Below, piece after piece: positions 11,577-20,179 of a stretch of DNA of 64,000 bases. The notes under the pieces were generated by a model. The model was not told the origin of the DNA and searched no databases. It saw only the letters and a program-made list of their open reading frames with translations. Source of the DNA: Scyliorhinus canicula (lineage: Eukaryota). The number at the start of each line of letters is the position of its first letter. The first letter of the stretch is position 1. Both the position numbers and the translations under genes were made by a program. The DNA is taken from contig NC_052153.1 in assembly GCF_902713615.1 (NCBI RefSeq), positions 51,190,763 through 51,254,762 of the forward strand. Reading direction: 5' to 3'.

Positions 11577-11879
11577 GGGCTGGGATTCCCTGAAAACGCG
11601 ACAAAGCGTTGACGCCGAGTGTTTCACGCTGACGTCAACGGGCCTCTTGGCCCAGTGATTCCGTTGCCCACAGGGGGCCAGCGCGGTGCTGGAGTGCTCC
11701 GCGCTGCTCCAGCTGCCGTACGCGGCCCTGCACTGCTCGCCGTGGGTCCGCGCACGCGCGGCTGGGGGCAATTCTCTGGTCACCGGAGAATCGCGTCCCG
11801 GTGTCGGATCGGCGTCGCGGGCCGTCTCAGTGTCATCTCCGATTCTCCGAGCAGGGGTGGGGTCGCAGAATCCCGGCCC
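11577..11879. mobile_element. GC-rich MITE (internally deleted)
   Basis: gggctgggattc...gaatcccggccc; inverted homologue at 21000-21383. Confidence 0.8.
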
Positions 11880-12248
11880 AGATCTATAGTAATCTGTTTG
11901 TCCCTTAACTGCCCTCTGAAATGGTTTTGCAAGCCACTCATTTCAAGGGCAATTTGGGATGAGCAGAAATGGTGGCCTTACCAGTGACACCCACACCCCA
12001 TTCAACAAACTTCTGTAAATTAATTTGTTATTTTATATTCAGAAAGACCTATCCAATTAGTTCCACACCCTGCTTTCTCTGTAGCCTTCATTTTTCTTCT
12101 TTTCAAATAAATGTTATCAATTCCTTTTAGAATGTTATGACTGAATCTGCTTCCGGCAGTGTATTCAAAATGACAACAACCGAGTGCGCGAAATAAACTC
12201 TCCAGTATTCAGTCTTTCTGGGTCCATATCTGGATCTGCCTGGCAGAA

Positions 12249-12464: not shown

Positions 12465-13289
12465 GAACTCTCCGGCGCCGGGGTTTTGGCGGGGGCGGGA
12501 ATCGCGGCGTGCCGGTCGGCGGCTGCTGGCAGCGGCCCCCCCCTCCCCCCGGTGATTCTCCAGCCCGCGATGGGCCAAGTGGCCACCCGTTTCTGGCGGA
12601 TCGCGCCGGCGTAAATCACAACAGGTCCTTACCGGTGGGACCTGGCTCCACGGACGGCCTGCAGAGTCCTCGGGGGGGGGGGCGCAGGGGGATCTGGCCC
12701 CCGGGGGGGTGCCCCACGGTGGCCTCGCCCGTGATCGGGGCCCACCGATCCGTGGGCGGGCCTGTGCCGTCGGGGCACTCTTTCCCTCTGCACCGGCCGC
12801 TGTTAACCTCCGCCACGGCCGGTATGGAAAAGAACCCCCCTGTGCATGCACCAACTCACGTTGGCTGGCGGATGCCCTTCTGCGCCGGTTGGCGTGGCGC
12901 CAAACATTCCGGTGCTGGCCTAACCCCGAAGGTGCAGAGGAGAAGGCGGCCCGACGCCGGAGTGGTTCATGCAACTCCTCGGCGCCGGAGTGGCCCGCCC
13001 TGCTGGTTTCCGGAGAATCCCGCCTCGAGTGTTTCACGCCAACGTCAACGGGCCTCTTGGCCCAGTGATTCTGTTGCCCACAGGGGGCCAGCGCGGTGCT
13101 GGAGTGCTCTGCACTGCTCCAGCTGCCATATGCGGCCCTGTACTGCTCACGGTGGGTCTGCGCGCGTGCGGCTGGGAGCGATTCTCTGGTCACCGGAGAT
13201 TTGTGTCCCGGCGTCGGATCGGCGTCGCGGGCCGTCTCAGCGTCATCTCCGATTCTCCGAGCAGGGGTGGGTTCGCAGAATCCCGGCCC
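12465..13289. mobile_element. Two nested GC-rich MITE pieces (12465-13025 and 13026-13289)
   Basis: Two right-hand TIRs (ggagaatcccgcc and gaatcccggccc); similar to the copies at 39332 and 11577. Confidence 0.75.
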
Positions 13290-13745
13290 AGAACTATAGT
13301 AATCTGTTTGTCCCTTAACTGCCCTCTGAAATGGCTTTGCAAGCCACTCATTTCAAAGGCAATTTGGGATGAGCAGAATTGGTGGCCTTACCAATGACAC
13401 CCACAACCCATTCAACAAAGTTTATTTTATAAAATGTAAAATCTCAATAAATATATTTTTTTACAAATGAAACTTTGTAGGGAAGAAGTTCCCTTTCCCA
13501 GATGTATTGTGGCAGAATGGAGGACTGTGTGGATCCAGCTAAAGTTAAAGTGGTTTTGGAGATATTGATGCTGCCTGATGTAGCAGGAACCCAGTGACTC
13601 TTTGGCTTGCTTACTATCGGAGTAAGTTTCTCCTGCATCTGTTAGATATAACAAAGCAACTCAGAGACTTAACACAGGATAAAGAATTGTTTTTGGGTTA
13701 ATTGCAAGAATTGGCACTGCAAATGAAGTGGTCACCAACACACCA

Positions 13746-13968
13746 GGCGGGTGGCACAATGGTTAGCACTGCTGCCTTACGGAGCTGATGACCCAGGTTC
13801 AATCCTGGCTCCAGGTCATTGTCTGAGTGGAGTTTTCACATTCTCCCAGTGTCTGTGTAGGTCCTACCCCCACAACCCAAAGATGTGCAAGGTAGATGGA
13901 CTGGACACACTAAATTGCCCCTTAATTGAAAAAAAAAATGAATTGGGCACTTTAAATTAATAAAAAAC
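13746..13968 (+). mobile_element. HE1-like SINE, short A-tailed subfamily
   Basis: Same subfamily at 17850-18063, 38090-38308, 41265-41455, 45280-45498 and 49735-49957 (all -) and 63099-63310 (+). Confidence 0.8.
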
Positions 13969-15392
13969 AATACACCAGTCCTTGGGAATTATAATCTCAA
14001 AGTAGAAGTTAGTTTACAATGCAGTGCATCTTAATCTGCGTTTGGAGTAGTATTGATCCAAAATGCACAGCCAGTCTTGTATGTATCAAGCACAACTCAG
14101 TAAAGGCAACAAGCGTATAGATCTAGAAAATATTTCTAGTGATCCTGTACATTGTGTTGATTTTGAAGATTACATCCAAGGCTGGGACATAATGAATAAT
14201 GAAACGGATCATCTGTTAGAATTAATAGTAGCACACCATTAAATAGTGCGCCTCAGAGACTTCAAAGAATGATGTTAAGATGGAAGTCTTCCAGATGTTA
14301 ATACCTATGATTTTTCTTGTGATGTAGAAGAAATTGACTCTCACGAATTACTTGGAGATTCATGCTGGCATAAATGTAATCATGCTGCAATGGATGATTC
14401 GGTTCAGAAGTAATTCCAGATTATTATTTGACAAAGCTGGCCTAGGATCAAGTCAGAGATACCCAACTTCTTAGACCTTTACTTTATCTTCCTAGTTGAA
14501 CTAACTTTCTAAGGAGATTTAATATTCAAAGGACAGCAATTAATGGTACCCGCTGTATTGCGAAAGGAATTAATGTCAATAGCTCATTCAACATACATTG
14601 ACACCAAAGATTGGACTTGAAGAGTCTGCGACTGCCTCTACCAGCCTAGGATGTCAACAGAATGTAAACACACATTGCAAAGTGTGATATCTCTTAGGCT
14701 GATTAGAGTTCTCCAAGTAAGGAACCATTACTATGACACAAGATTATGGCTAGGCCTTGGTCAAATGTTGGGTTGATCTTTGATAATTACGTGGAGGTGA
14801 CCTTGACTGTAACTTTATAGAAGTAGCCAATCTCACTCGCAGTGTTCTGAGAGAACTTCAGCAGATGTTTGGAAGGTTTGGAATACCAGACATGATAGTA
14901 ACTCAGAATTTGCAGCCACAGAATTTGTTTGTCAAGAGATGGGGATTGAGACATGTGACATCATTACATCACTACCTGCAGTCCAATGGCAAAGTTGAGA
15001 ATGTCGTCATAACTATCAAATGACTCTTCATGAAATGCAAGGAGTCTGGTCAAAGTTTTCAGCTCTGGAAGATTGGCGCAACATACCGAATGAAGGAATC
15101 CATCACATAGGTGTATTGGTCAGAGGTGGGGCACACATTCTCCTTTAGTAGCCTGGCAATACAACAGAGGAAGGCACTTGAGTGTTGGCATGAAGCAATG
15201 TCAACAGTATTACTACAACAGGAATGCTAAATCATTTCAAGGAATGGTATGATACAAATGAAATTACCAGTCCAGAGTACAGGGATTGCTGGAACAAGCA
15301 CACCCGTGATGGGTCCAAGAAGTTACAATGTACAAGCCAGAGACTCACCTTGCCACAGGAATTGTGTCAGTTGATTTGTGCTGTTTAGTTAC

Positions 15393-15662
15393 TGATGTAC
15401 CATCAATTGAACGCGAGACGAGTTGCTGAACAAAAGTATGGCTTTAATCAGCTAGATGTTAGCCCTGCGGTCGATTACAGTAGAAGGACGACCGCCGGGC
15501 GTACTGGGTATTTATACCCTGCCCCGGAGGCGGGGTTAGCTCAGCCTTTCGACCAGTCGGGGAGCCGTCACATGACTGGCCTCAACCAACCGGTCGAGAG
15601 GCACATGACCGACCAGGGCCAATGGTAAGCCGGTGTTCTGCAATGCTAATCATACCACCACA
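15393..15662 (-). mobile_element. Solo LTR (270 bp)
   Basis: TG...CA termini, perfect 5-bp TSD GTTAC (15388-15392 and 15663-15667), TATA-like and ATTAAA motifs on the minus strand. Confidence 0.85.
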
Positions 15663-15791
15663 GTTACCCAGAAGCAAAACTCCAAAGACTGAAGACTTTC
15701 CTAAAATGCAGGTCCCCATTGGTCCTCTGAGTTGTCCACAGTCTCCATGCAAACAGAAATGGAAACACATGAAACACCTTTTAGTCAAGCA

Positions 15792-15963
15792 CCAATGATG
15801 GACTTTGCGAGCAACAACAGGAACATCAGCTCCACTGTGAGCTGCTCAGACACGAGGAAGGCCAGCGTCCAGCTCATTCGCAAGCTCTACGTACTGATGC
15901 AGAGCCTTTGGCCCCTTTCCAACGACATCTGCTTGAAGATGAAGCTTTCTTACTACGACGAAG
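15792..15963 (+). pseudogene. HORMA-domain (HORMAD1/2-like) coding fragment
   Basis: PMMDFASNNRNISSTVSCSDTRKASVQLIRKLYVLMQSLWPLSNDICLKMKLSYYDE matches the vertebrate HORMAD1 segment I recall as [57 protein letters not shown]. It ends at GAAG|GTAATT. Confidence 0.85.
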
Positions 15964-15971
15964 GTAATTTA

Positions 15972-16412
15972 CCTCGGTGCAGGCATCGATGAAGCACACA
16001 GAGTGCAGTACTACTCAGTAGAGAAGATGTTCATAAGAGGGTCATTTAGGAGTCCGGTAACAGTGGGGAAGAAGCTGTTTTCGAGTCTGTTCGTGCGTGT
16101 TCTCAGACTTTTGTATCTCCTGCCCAATGGAAGAAGTTGGAAGAGTGAGTAAGCCAGTGGGGTGTCTTTGATTATGCTGCCCGCTTTCTCCAGGCAGCGG
16201 GAGGTGTAGATGGAGTCAATGGATGGGAGGCAGGTTTGTGTGATGGACTGGGCTGTGTTCACGACTCTGAAGTTTCTTACGGTCTTGGGCCGAGCAGTTG
16301 CCATACCAGGCTGTGATGCAGAGAGATATGATGCTTTCTATGGTGCATCTGTAAAAGTTGGAGAGAGTTAATGTGGACATACCGAATTTCCTTCATTTCC
16401 TGAGGAAGTATA
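15972..16412 (-). mobile_element. Rex/Babar-type LINE 3' fragment
   Basis: ORF 16011-16304 contains LFQLLPLGRRYKSLRTRTNRLENSFFP, a typical Rex1/Babar RT C-terminus. Confidence 0.75.
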
Positions 16413-16729
16413 GGCAGCATGGTAACATAGTGGTTAGCACTGTTGCTTCACAGCTCCAGGGTCCCAGATTCGATTCCCGGCTTGGGTCACCGTCTGTGTG
16501 GGTTACCTCCGGATGGTCCGGTTTCCTCCCACAGTCCAAAGATGTGCGGGTTAGGTGGATTGGCCATGCTAAATTGCCCTTAGTGTCCACAAAAGGTTAA
16601 GTGGGGGTTACTGGGTTACGGGGATAGGGTAGATACGGGGGCTTCAGTAGGGTGCTCTTTGTAAGGGCCGGTGCAGACTCGATGGGCCGAATGGCCTCCT
16701 TCTGCACTGTAAATTCTATGATTCTATGA
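16412..16729 (+). mobile_element. tRNA-derived shark SINE (HE1/V-SINE-like) with (TTCTATGA)n tail
   Basis: A/B boxes, conserved core ggtttcctcccacagtccaaagatgtgc, CR1-type tail. Confidence 0.85.
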
Positions 16730-18452
16730 ATTCCAAGGCAGCGTCAGCCTCCATCTCCATTGAAAAACAATTTGTTGACGTAGTTCCTGCTTGTTATTGT
16801 ACGCTTTGCTATGATAAGTTTTGAAGTTCCTCTATACGTGTGTTTATTTTTTAAACTGAGGGGGAAGGATGTGATGCGAGACACACATTTGCTACAGGTG
16901 CACAGCATCTGGGTAATCATCATGTGATTCATCATGCGTCTCGTCAGGTGAATTCTTTATGTGCTCTCTCTCTTGTTTATGTGATCTGATAAGCAGCACT
17001 ATACTTGTAAGTCCTGAAACTTCTGTAAATTAATTTGTTATTTTATATTCAGAAAGACCTATCCAATTAGTTCCACATCCTGCTTTCTCCGTCGCCTTCA
17101 TTTTTTTTCTTTTCAAATAAATATTATCAATTCCTTTTTGAATGTTACGACTGAATTTGCTTCAGGCAGTGTTTCCAAATGACAACAACCGAGTGCGCAA
17201 AATAAACTCTCTTCATCTCCCACCAGGTTCTTGAGATACGTTCTTGCATAGTACTATTTTAAAGCCACAGTTTTCCTTATTAGCAAGGACAAGTTCTTGG
17301 AAAATGCCTGCAGCAACATTGTGTAATATGAATAATCTTTAATCAATAATCTTCAATAATTTGAGACAAGAGCTTGCAAATACTGGTGATTTAAAGGATA
17401 AGCTATTATCATTTTGGACTTTTTGATTTCAGATTTAGTTCACTTAATGGTACCTTCCCTGTTGCAAACTGGTAAACCAAGCAAAATAATTCTTTTTCCA
17501 GAGAATTATGATGAACCCAGAACCTTAAAGCCAACTAATGATGTTTCCAGTTTCAGGATGATTAGGCCATTTTTACTTGTCATGTTCTGTTTTAATTGGA
17601 TGACTGTTGCCAAAAAAAGAATTATGCAGTTCTTTGAAATTAAAGTCAAATCAATTCTTACCCTGAAAAGTAAAGACTGTTTGTATTTAAAAGGTCTCTT
17701 GTAGATCATAACAACTTTAATACATAGAGCATGGTTTATGGTTGTGGGAGGGTGGGGGTTGGAGTTGTCTCATTGGTCTGTGTCCAGATATCCAGGATTG
17801 CCAGGGCGCATTGACTGTTCCAAAACTCGGATAGTCCATTTTTAATTTTATTTAAAAAAATAAATTTAGAGTACCCAATTAATTTTTTCCAATTAAGGGG
17901 CAATTTATCAAGGCCTACCCTGCACATCTTTGGGTTGTGGGGCGAAACCCACACAAACACGGGAAGAATGTGCAAACTCCACAGGGACAGTGACCCAGAG
18001 CCAGGATTGAATCTGGGACCTCAGTGCCGTGAGACAGCAGCACTGCGCCACCATGCTGCCCCTAGGATGGTCCTCTTTAAAAAAAGTAATATTTTATTGT
18101 CACAAGTAGGCTTACATTAACACTGCAATGAAGTTATTGTGAAAAGCCCCTAGTCGCCACATTCTGCCGCCTGTCCGGGTATACAGAGAGAGAATACAGA
18201 ATTCTCAGCCGGTACAGGAATTGAACCCGTGCAGCTAGCCTTATATGCATTACAAACCAGCTATCGATCCCACTGAGCTAAACCAGCCCTCTTTATATGC
18301 CAATGCTGAGATAATGTAGTAATCCAGGAGAAACAAAGATAAAGGTTAAACCAAATTTATTTTAACTCCAAAGTAAAGCCACACCCGTGCCATATAATAC
18401 TAGTGTCCCAGCCCAGGACTAACAGGAACTCCCAGCCCTGGCCTGGGACAGT

Positions 18453-18643
18453 GGGCGGGATTCTTCGGTCCTTCAGCCCCGTGTTTCTCGGCCGCGCGCC
18501 ATTCGCTGGCAGCGGGATTCAATCTTCCCGCTGGTTGTCAATGGGTTTTCCCATTGTAGCCACTCCACACTGCCGGGAAACCCACGGGCAAGGGTGTGCT
18601 GCCGGTGGGAGAAGAGAATCTCAATGGCTCAAAAATTCCGGCC
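18453..18643. mobile_element. Short palindromic MITE with 3-bp TSD AGT
   Basis: The empty site GGGACAGTATTT is visible in the sister LTR near 28683-28694. Confidence 0.85.
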
Positions 18644-20179
18644 AGTATTTCAAAGGCCCGATACCAAGTCCCAGCTGGATGGTTTTCAGCCTGTTACCAT
18701 GGAAACCCATACTCAACAAGCCTACCGGGAGGATTCCTTCTCATCCTCGTGAGGATTATCAGATTCTCCACCCATTCCCCAGGTTGGGATCCTCCCCCTC
18801 ATTCCAGCAACCATGAGGCCGCCTGCGCCGCTTTGCAAATGGCCTGGAGTCCATCTTCAGTGGAGTTGGGTCTGGGGGCGTAAAGTGGACGGGGAATCGT
18901 CGTTTCCTCACTGAGCACCGAAGGGCCATTGGTGGGGGTTCTACCCCAATGTTGATTTCTGGCTGCAGATCCGCCAGCTCAGTTTCCATGTCGGAACCTG
19001 AGTCTTCGTCCTACTGGGGGACAACTCACAGGTGTATCATGGGTTCTAGGCTCTTGCCCAGTGGTAGATTCCAAAGATGTTGAGGGAGTCACCCCACCTG
19101 GAGGAATCTCTGCAGCTAAGGGTTCCCTTTTCCGACGATGGTCCACGCGCTTTTTTAAGGTCCTCTCCCTGGTTTTGAACTTGTATAACACAGGGCCAGT
19201 CTTCTCAACTACCACTTCTGGGATTCAAGAGGATCAATCTCCGAAATTGCAAGTATAGATGGTACCTCCCGACCTGAAAGTCCTATCAGGTCGTCAGGTG
19301 TCAAAATGTTTCCTTTGAGCCTCCTGTGTTGACTCCACTTTCCCACCTAGGTTGGGAAACAATAGACTGACCCTGGTCCGGAGGCATTGGCCCATCAGCA
19401 GTTACATTAGCGCAACCCACCGCCATGTGATGTTGTCCTGTAGTTGAAAAAGAACCGAGCCAGTTTGGTGTCGAGCAAGCTGGTGGTCTGTTTCTTCACA
19501 CCGCTTTTTGACGTTTGGAATGTCTGCTTGGCCAAGCCATTAGAAGATGTGTGGTGGGGCAGCATCCAAATGTACTTCATCATATTGGACTTCATGAATG
19601 CCTAGAAATTTCCCTGGAGAAAGGGGTCCCATTGTCGGACACGAGGACCTCCAGTATCCCATGAATGCAAAATGATTGCCGGAGTTTTTCTATAGTATCA
19701 CTGGAAGTTGTGGAGGACACCCGATGTATGTCCAAACATTTAGAATGGGCAGTGACCAAAATCAAAAACACTGAACCCATAAATGGCCTGGCGAAATCCA
19801 CATGTACCCATATCCAAAGCCTTCCTGGCCATTCCCATGGGTATAGCAAGACCGATGATGGGAACTTCTGATTTGCCTTACATGATGGATACTGTTTCAC
19901 CAAACGTTCAATGTTGGAATCAAGCCCGGGCCACCAGACATTGTTCCTGGTGAGCATCTTCATCTTGGAGACTCCTGTGAGACCACTGTGCAGCTCCTTT
20001 AAGATTGGGCACTGGCCAGGGCGCCCCCCATGCTGGATTCTTGGCATTTAAATAGGAAGGGCTTTAGGTCCTCTGTAGGATATCCTTCGATTCTGCCGCT
20101 TAGGATCATATGGCGTAGTTTCTCCAGTAATCAGTCTTTCTGGGTCCATATCTGGATCTGCCTGGTGGAAACAGGCATG

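Follow-up and report, generated by a model that had tools for sequence, protein, structure and literature searches.

A candidate poly(A)-independent transduction of HORMAD1 exons through a CR1-type SINE tail in a shark genome

In the stretch of 64,000 nucleotides that we analysed as a whole (the window), a block of about 930 nt, located approximately at 15798-16728, links two fused pieces of HORMAD1 to the start of a HORMAD1 intron, an antisense LINE fragment and a sense SINE (Table 1). This block most likely corresponds to one RNA-mediated insertion that took place after the split from the sister species. The reading that we favor, with a probability of about 0.58, is that reverse transcription was primed from the tail of the SINE on a partly spliced HORMAD1 transcript that carried both the SINE and the LINE fragment in its intron. 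The block would then be a case of poly(A)-independent 5'-transduction of exons, which we consider as probable but unproven.

Table 1. Features of the inserted block and of its right flank (positions in the window).
Feature	Position	Strand	Evidence
HORMAD1 exon N, 3' end (..(AP)MMDFA-S)	15789..15811	+	shark HORMAD1 protein alignment
Complete HORMAD1 exon N+1 (NNRNISSTV...KLSYYDE + G, 152 nt)	15812..15963	+	PDB, Pfam, protein alignment; other-vertebrate ORF borders
Retained downstream intron start, GTAATT + ~80 nt single-copy	15964..16045	+	donor common to C. plagiosum; contig depth
LINE (non-LTR) ORF2 C-terminal fragment, 5'-truncated, frameshifted	16046..16412	-	ORFs, Atlas, copy depth
Full-length tRNA-headed SINE	16413..16728	+	relatives in window; family ends from contig loose ends
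SINE 3' hairpin, 9-bp outer stem + GGGCC/GGCCU inner stem, putative RT-binding site	16669..16709	+	predicted fold
CR1-type 8-nt microsatellite (ATTCTATG)x2, last base = last base of the insertion	16713..16728	+	sequence; sister-species contig
Right flank/target site AATTCCAAGGCA	16729..16740	+	sequence; present in sister-species contig

Components of the block

The plus-strand ORF 15732-15992 matched human HORMAD1 in the PDB search (8j69_A, residues 123-186, E=1.8e-18) and the Pfam HORMA profile PF02301 with 40.6 bits, for a cut-off of 24. An earlier inspection of the letters alone (hereafter the sequence-only reading) had described a stop-free HORMAD-like segment here and had proposed the match of its peptide to a HORMA profile as a test, so that its identification is upheld by these scores as well as by the protein alignment. 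The closest of the shark proteins was the HORMAD1 of Scyliorhinus torazame (P0270), with 52 of 56 residues identical and four substitutions. Over the stretch compared (PMMDFASNNRN...KLSYYDE), the variants were P(T/M)MDFASNNRNISSTVSCSDTRKAS(I/V)QLIRKLYVLMQSL(G/W)PL(P/S)NDICLKMKLSYYDE, and the signatures NNRN and DTRKAS.Q, otherwise unique, were common to the two sequences. To judge from this near-identity, the genome is that of a Scyliorhinus-like catshark and the HORMAD1 copy of the window is young. This copy is short, lacks a promoter, is probably inert and has no evident function. A tblastn search with four HORMAD1 proteins recovered no second HORMAD1 piece in the 64-kb window, and a word-index protein search with the window ORF as query recovered no shark genomic ORF bearing the window exon, the gene model of Chiloscyllium plagiosum being the sole match. 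The 24-mer covering exon and donor was absent from the metagenomes scanned.

Bases 15798-15963 comprise the end of one HORMAD1 exon (exon N) fused to the entire next exon (exon N+1). The two meet at the junction AG|C at 15811|15812 (..ATGGACTTTGCGAG|CAACAAC..) with no intron between them; on the exon N side, only 15798-15811 (ATGGACTTTGCGAG) is securely derived from HORMAD1, and 15789-15800 may be older flank. In genomic ORF fragments of tetrapods and teleosts (P0004, P0008, P0018, P0016 and others), the corresponding exon starts directly after an intron-encoded ..FS or ..TS, and it leaves into an intron after YY(D/E)(D/E)-G. The great white shark isoform P0271 skips the LRML..EDPQ exon, which fits the exon borders seen in these other vertebrates. 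Since MDFAS and NNRN are contiguous in the window where other vertebrates have an intron, the upstream intron appears to have been removed. Its loss at 15811|15812, with the position of the intron taken from the tetrapod and teleost ORFs, marks the segment as a putatively RNA-derived copy, the presence of a splice junction arguing for an RNA intermediate. The intron that the sequence-only reading had postulated between MDFAS and NNRN is thus supported indirectly, through these genomic ORFs and the exon skipping of P0271.

On the other side, after GAA-G, the intron begins with GTAATT at 15964. The end of the segment at YYDE G|GTAATT had been read in the same way before, and the donor matches that of the C. 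plagiosum gene model P0001, which reads through it (YYDEGN = G|GTAAT). The neighbours of P0001 are LysM, TNFAIP8 and FLAD1-like genes, as expected of the true locus; HORMAD1 genes were located in C. plagiosum (14.4 kb model), Mustelus asterias (42.6 kb) and S. torazame (58 kb). Because this downstream donor is retained, the source would have been a partly spliced transcript. The ~82 bases between the end of the exon and the LINE piece were unique, with single-copy depth in the contig pile-up, and alignment of the window with the back-translated intron read-through of C. plagiosum revealed no similarity past GTAAT.

The 82-nt stretch past GTAAT having no further intron match, the block could alternatively be a template-switch chimera. 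A CR1-type reverse transcriptase (RT) would have begun on another Pol II transcript, in which the old LINE scrap and the SINE lay internally or at the end, and then jumped to a partly spliced HORMAD1 pre-mRNA, in which case the two repeats never lay in a HORMAD1 intron. For chimeric retroposons, CR1-type enzymes have been suggested to switch templates (PMC5729268), and this model would account equally well for the absence of the block as a unit from the sister species and for its microsatellite end. However, an extra event is needed, no junction sign such as filler or microhomology is identifiable, and contig depths in the sister species (next section) weakly suggest that the parental locus there carries on with the same sequence for 24 nt or more after the exon. 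We therefore regard template switching as rather unlikely.

The antisense LINE fragment that the sequence-only reading had placed downstream of the donor was recovered through an ORF2 motif on the minus strand and a high copy number. Two minus-strand ORFs (16216-16380 and 16011-16304) bear the ORF2 C-terminal motif FYRCTIES...GRRYKSLRTRTNRLENSFFP...LLN, and Atlas grouped the fragment with chordate clusters (0.95); Pfam returned no matches for the LINE ORFs. In the contig pile-up, the region was very high-copy both in this genome (organism A) and in the sister species (organism B), the depth of the family set in close to 16047, where the ORF ends with ..LLN, and the piece departed from 70-99% of the family copies at 15 positions or more. 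No significant similarity was detected between the fragment's own 3' end and the SINE tail. We also considered GTAATTTACC as the reverse complement of a CR1-like tail belonging to the antisense LINE itself, a candidate that was rejected, its reverse-complement alignment to the SINE tail being no better than shuffles. On the plus strand, the comparison with the SINE tail gave a weak match, CGGTGCAGgCaTCGATG (z ~3.3). The sequence CGGTGCAGGCATCGATG at 15974-15991 resembles the start of the SINE 3' hairpin, CGGTGCAGACTCGATG (z ~3.3 versus shuffles); the likeness may stem from the remains of a further tail in the retained intron start, or from chance.

The SINE has at least 15 relatives in the 64-kb window. 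In the contig pile-up, loose ends placed the 5' and 3' ends of the family exactly at 16413 and 16728, and in thousands of family copies the sequence directly before 16413 and past the tail is AT-rich and unrelated. The earlier description of a sense SINE with a repeat tail was confirmed. ARAGORN detected no tRNA in the SINE head. The predicted fold of the 3' hairpin has an energy of -22.2 kcal/mol (z = -1.9), and the hairpin is followed by TAA and then by (ATTCTATG)x2, the same repeat that the sequence-only reading had written as TTCTATGA. A hairpin with an AUUCURUG microsatellite is the signature of CR1 tails and of CR1-mobilised SINEs (PMC5729268), and "stringent" LINEs require such 3' tails, which SINEs borrow (PMC3747384). 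By its hairpin and its (ATTCTATG)x2, the tail matches the published motif (PMC5729268), in agreement with the CR1-type tail suggested before; as far as sequence can tell, a hairpin and an 8-nt ATTCTRTG-type microsatellite at the extreme 3' end identify this insertion as CR1-type. The block does not end in an A-run, that is, the classical L1-type 3' tail is absent from it. There is no clear target-site duplication (TSD), as already remarked from the letters; only ATG (3 nt) is common to the end of the left flank and the end of the insert.

Compared with the majority consensus of ten window copies, the SINE exhibits 8.3% substitutions and a private 30-nt internal deletion near 16495. Its B-box has a G>A change at 16468. 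In the contig pile-up, many positions of the SINE, this one among them, and of the LINE piece differ from 97-99% of the copies of their families. Because the SINE is 8.3% off its consensus and has a private deletion, for a divergence of ~4% between organisms A and B, and because the exon part has at most four amino-acid changes and the block is absent from the ~4%-divergent species, we infer that both the LINE and the SINE predate the insertion and were hence passengers in it rather than fresh insertions. The argument based on age would be weaker if the SINE came, as it may, from an active but rare subfamily with the 30-nt deletion.

These ages bear on the possibility of stepwise nesting, in which a HORMAD1 cDNA fragment was inserted first, followed by independent insertions of the LINE and of the SINE. 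Both repeats are extremely abundant, so that chance neighbours should be common, and the SINE is full-length, like an ordinary insertion. However, the LINE and the SINE are ~8% or more off their consensus, against ~4% divergence of the locus between the species. Moreover, the three elements must abut without any sequence between them, the antisense LINE does not resume past the SINE, and no route is known by which a tailless cDNA fragment with an unspliced donor at its end could be inserted. Stepwise nesting further requires either a deletion of the whole block in organism B, which must match the end of the microsatellite to the base, or incomplete lineage sorting, and appears very unlikely to us.

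The corresponding site in the sister species

Two organisms contain the stretch, this genome (A) and the sister species (B). Contigs of three organism-A runs and of one organism-B run were aligned to 15000-17250 with at least 80% identity. An organism-B contig of 2710 nt aligned to 15000-15386 and to 16729-17250, with 36 differences in 909 aligned nt (~4%) and 118 nt of contig between the two parts. By length arithmetic, these 118 nt are accounted for by 15662-15750 and 15772-15800 (89 + 29 = 118). That the contig re-enters at 15662 follows from the organism-B depth in the bin 15608-15683, 2.06, which equals 7.1x22/76. Organism B lacks every component of the block (~15801-16728), from the HORMAD1 piece and the intron start to the LINE scrap and the SINE. 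The block is therefore present in one species and missing from the orthologous, empty site of the other, as observed in one Logan contig, with length arithmetic for its middle piece. The right breakpoint falls at 16728|16729, directly after the final base of the microsatellite. The left breakpoint lies at ~15800, with a 5' edge uncertain from 15789 to 15801 because CCAATG could have come from the exon (CCN ACG) or belong to the flank. Around the site, ..CCAATGATG | AATTCC.. looks like the microsatellite junction TATG|ATTC, a likeness predicted by annealing of the tail to a nicked target.

The sister species is also decisive for another explanation, namely that HORMAD1 RNA was taken up by a Gypsy element, through packaging or recombination, and that the fragment came in when the element integrated. 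The block is indeed flanked on one side by an integrase-like piece (14787-15020) and on the other by a polypurine-tract-like motif with a TG after it (~16859-16875). However, in the organism-B contig the degenerate remnant is present on either side of the site and the block is not, so that the block most likely arrived after the Gypsy-like remnant; in addition, the remnant was single-copy in the contig pile-up, and no family of block-carrying elements was seen. Capture by a Gypsy element, which the sequence-only reading had offered as its alternative, is contradicted by these data and hardly deserves credence. The single event that the same reading had proposed fares better: it is in line with the absence of the block as a unit from organism B, with the CR1-type tail and with the older age of the repeats.

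The unique part of the block was single-copy in the three organism-A runs (coverage ~50% each). Sampled words of the stretch were present in organism-A runs from at least three samples, and in a 31-mer search those from 15940-16040 (only five) were found only in organism-A runs. We recovered no parental contig on 15760-15911 in the three organism-A runs, a search of low sensitivity since the exon must exist there. In organism B, the depths of the bins 15836-15911 (3.4) and 15912-15987 (7.03) fit a single depth-7 contig extending from ~15875 over the end of the exon to at least 15987; by this arithmetic on depths, the contig is probably, if weakly, the parental exon running into the same intron start.

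The copy number is relevant to a further scenario, in which an older semi-processed HORMAD1 retrocopy, having received LINE and SINE insertions, was re-copied here, either by read-through transcription and priming on the SINE tail or by repair synthesis at the DNA level. Such a secondary copy would explain the presence of old repeats within a young insertion, and the four amino-acid differences from S. torazame could have accrued in the intermediate. On the other hand, the unique part is single-copy at the identity of at least 80% and the coverage given above, and a pure DNA mechanism predicts no breakpoint exactly at the end of the microsatellite. We consider this scenario improbable, to about the same degree as template switching.

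Two differences between the species were observed close to the insertion site. Just upstream of it, a 21-nt indel at 15750-15771, in the low-complexity sequence AAACAGAAATGGAAACACATGAAACACC, distinguishes this genome from the organism-B contig, one organism-B contig of depth 7.1 having a 21-nt deletion at 15750. Further upstream, a 270-nt element at 15393-15662 has TG..CA ends and a 5-bp duplication, GTTAC (15388-15392 and 15663-15667). Its summed depth reached ~10^4-10^5 in each of the three organism-A runs, against zero in organism B, and it is also missing from the organism-B contig; it looks like a solo LTR from a family that is very young, specific to the lineage and high in copy number. 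Besides, two small runs from one study (245 and 298 million letters) contain 60-80% of the sampled words of the stretch, a share that exceeds that of whole-genome runs. The locus may be transcribed, or enriched in the type of library of these two runs.

A candidate route of exon mobilisation

HORMAD1 is a germ-line meiotic gene, and a heritable retroposition event is therefore plausible. In SINE-tail-primed retroposition, the reading that we favor, the template would have been a germ-line HORMAD1 transcript with the upstream intron spliced out and the next intron retained. Within this retained intron, an antisense LINE fragment and, after it, a sense SINE would have lain, both already old, a parental HORMAD1 intron being presumably the simplest source of the two. 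A CR1-type ("stringent") LINE RT would have recognised the SINE 3' hairpin and the (AUUCUAUG)n microsatellite within the longer RNA; such internal initiation on a pre-mRNA by a shark CR1-type enzyme is assumed by analogy with other stringent LINEs. Primed on a nicked, microsatellite-like target (..ATG|AATTC..), the enzyme would have worked its way back over the SINE, then the LINE scrap, the intron start and all of exon N+1, to halt after 11-23 nt of exon N. Ending with a CR1-type tail, without poly(A) and 5'-truncated within an exon, the block suggests that a CR1-type LINE made it by target-primed reverse transcription, and we infer that a CR1-type enzyme was the agent of the event.

Several known systems share parts of this scheme. 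According to PMC3287187, which cites Hancks et al. 2009 and Damert et al. 2009, SVA_F1 of hominids gained MAST2 exon sequence via splicing. As in this SVA 5' transduction, a nonautonomous retroposon lying in a Pol II transcript of a host gene would have been mobilised by a LINE together with an upstream spliced exon. In contrast, SVA relies on L1 and poly(A) and the exon was spliced into the element, whereas the HORMAD1 block has a CR1-type hairpin and an 8-nt microsatellite, and an intron was retained; furthermore, SVA_F1 is an amplifying subfamily and the HORMAD1 block is single-copy. The semi-processed pseudogenes of mammals, such as rodent preproinsulin I and the TMF1 insertion in CYBB (PMC4151081), similarly have a partly spliced transcript as their source, with some introns gone and one kept. 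These mammalian cases are made by L1, with poly(A) at a genuine or cryptic site and TSDs, whereas the HORMAD1 block ends with the SINE microsatellite and has no poly(A).

The closest likeness at the 3' end is with ordinary CR1-mobilised SINEs, in which the hairpin and the (ATTCTRTG)n repeat also stand at the extreme 3' end and the insertion stops there. A normal copy of the SINE starts at the tRNA head (16413), whereas this insertion reaches ~615 nt further upstream and includes host exons. Among elasmobranchs, known SINE/LINE pairs are HE1/HER1 and SacSINE1 with its CR1-like partner (PMC3747384). Compared by description only, the SINE of the window is, like HE1 and SacSINE1, a tRNA-headed shark SINE presumably reliant on a partner of the CR1/L2 group via a common tail. 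Relative to the SVA and semi-processed cases, the novelty would reside in the use of a CR1-type SINE tail as the entry point, with the exon linked to it by a retained intron.

CR1/L2 genomes are thought to be poor in host retrocopies because mRNAs lack the required tail; according to PMC5729268 (citing Suh 2015, J Mol Evol) and PMC3747384, the stringent 3'-tail rule is considered to keep retrogenes rare in CR1-dominated genomes. The locus looks like a way round this rule, by which an intronic SINE lends its tail to a host pre-mRNA. If the parental intron has the same LINE and SINE, the block is a documented case of a CR1-type system that mobilises spliced exons independently of poly(A). It is tempting to speculate, although we hold this only tentatively, that intronic SINE tails are recurrent, unrecognised RT entry points on germ-line pre-mRNAs in sharks, and perhaps in other CR1/L2-dominated genomes, from which upstream spliced exons are copied without poly(A). 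If so, they would provide a route of exon shuffling and partial gene duplication, leaving SINE copies with transduced 5' flanks genome-wide. The copy itself being single, the interest of the block lies in its mechanism and in the search image that it provides, that of SINE copies with a 5' flank for which a paralogous intron-exon stretch exists at another place. A genome-wide search with this image could gauge the share of such events in the exon shuffling of cartilaginous fishes, birds and reptiles.

The surrounding sequence

Atlas placed 14787-15020 with rve integrase clusters (0.94), and this integrase-like piece is the only supported part of the Gypsy remnant. Pfam returned no matches for nine stop-free pieces of the presumed pol region, and the RT-thumb-like and polypurine-tract-like motifs were read by eye. 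At 16859-16880, the polypurine-tract-like sequence GAGGGGGAAGGA is followed by TGTGATG, where the 3' LTR of the degenerate retroelement may begin; no 5' LTR matching this region was found in the window.

A Pax motif scan detected no paired-box motif in the 64-kb window. Rfam gave nothing above threshold, its sole match being mir-488 at 13298-13380 (26 bits for a gathering threshold of 88, E=0.016), probably due to chance.

Finally, a patchwork direct repeat spans 11616-12248. Its pieces resemble three separate parts of the window (11616-12012 and 13026-13422, 93%; 12007-12202 and 17017-17211, 94%; 12199-12243 and 20121-20165, 98%) and are joined at the microhomologies AAA and TCTC. This repeat is either a pre-insertion copy, 13423-17016 and 17212-20120 being then later insertions, or a compacted template-switch copy.
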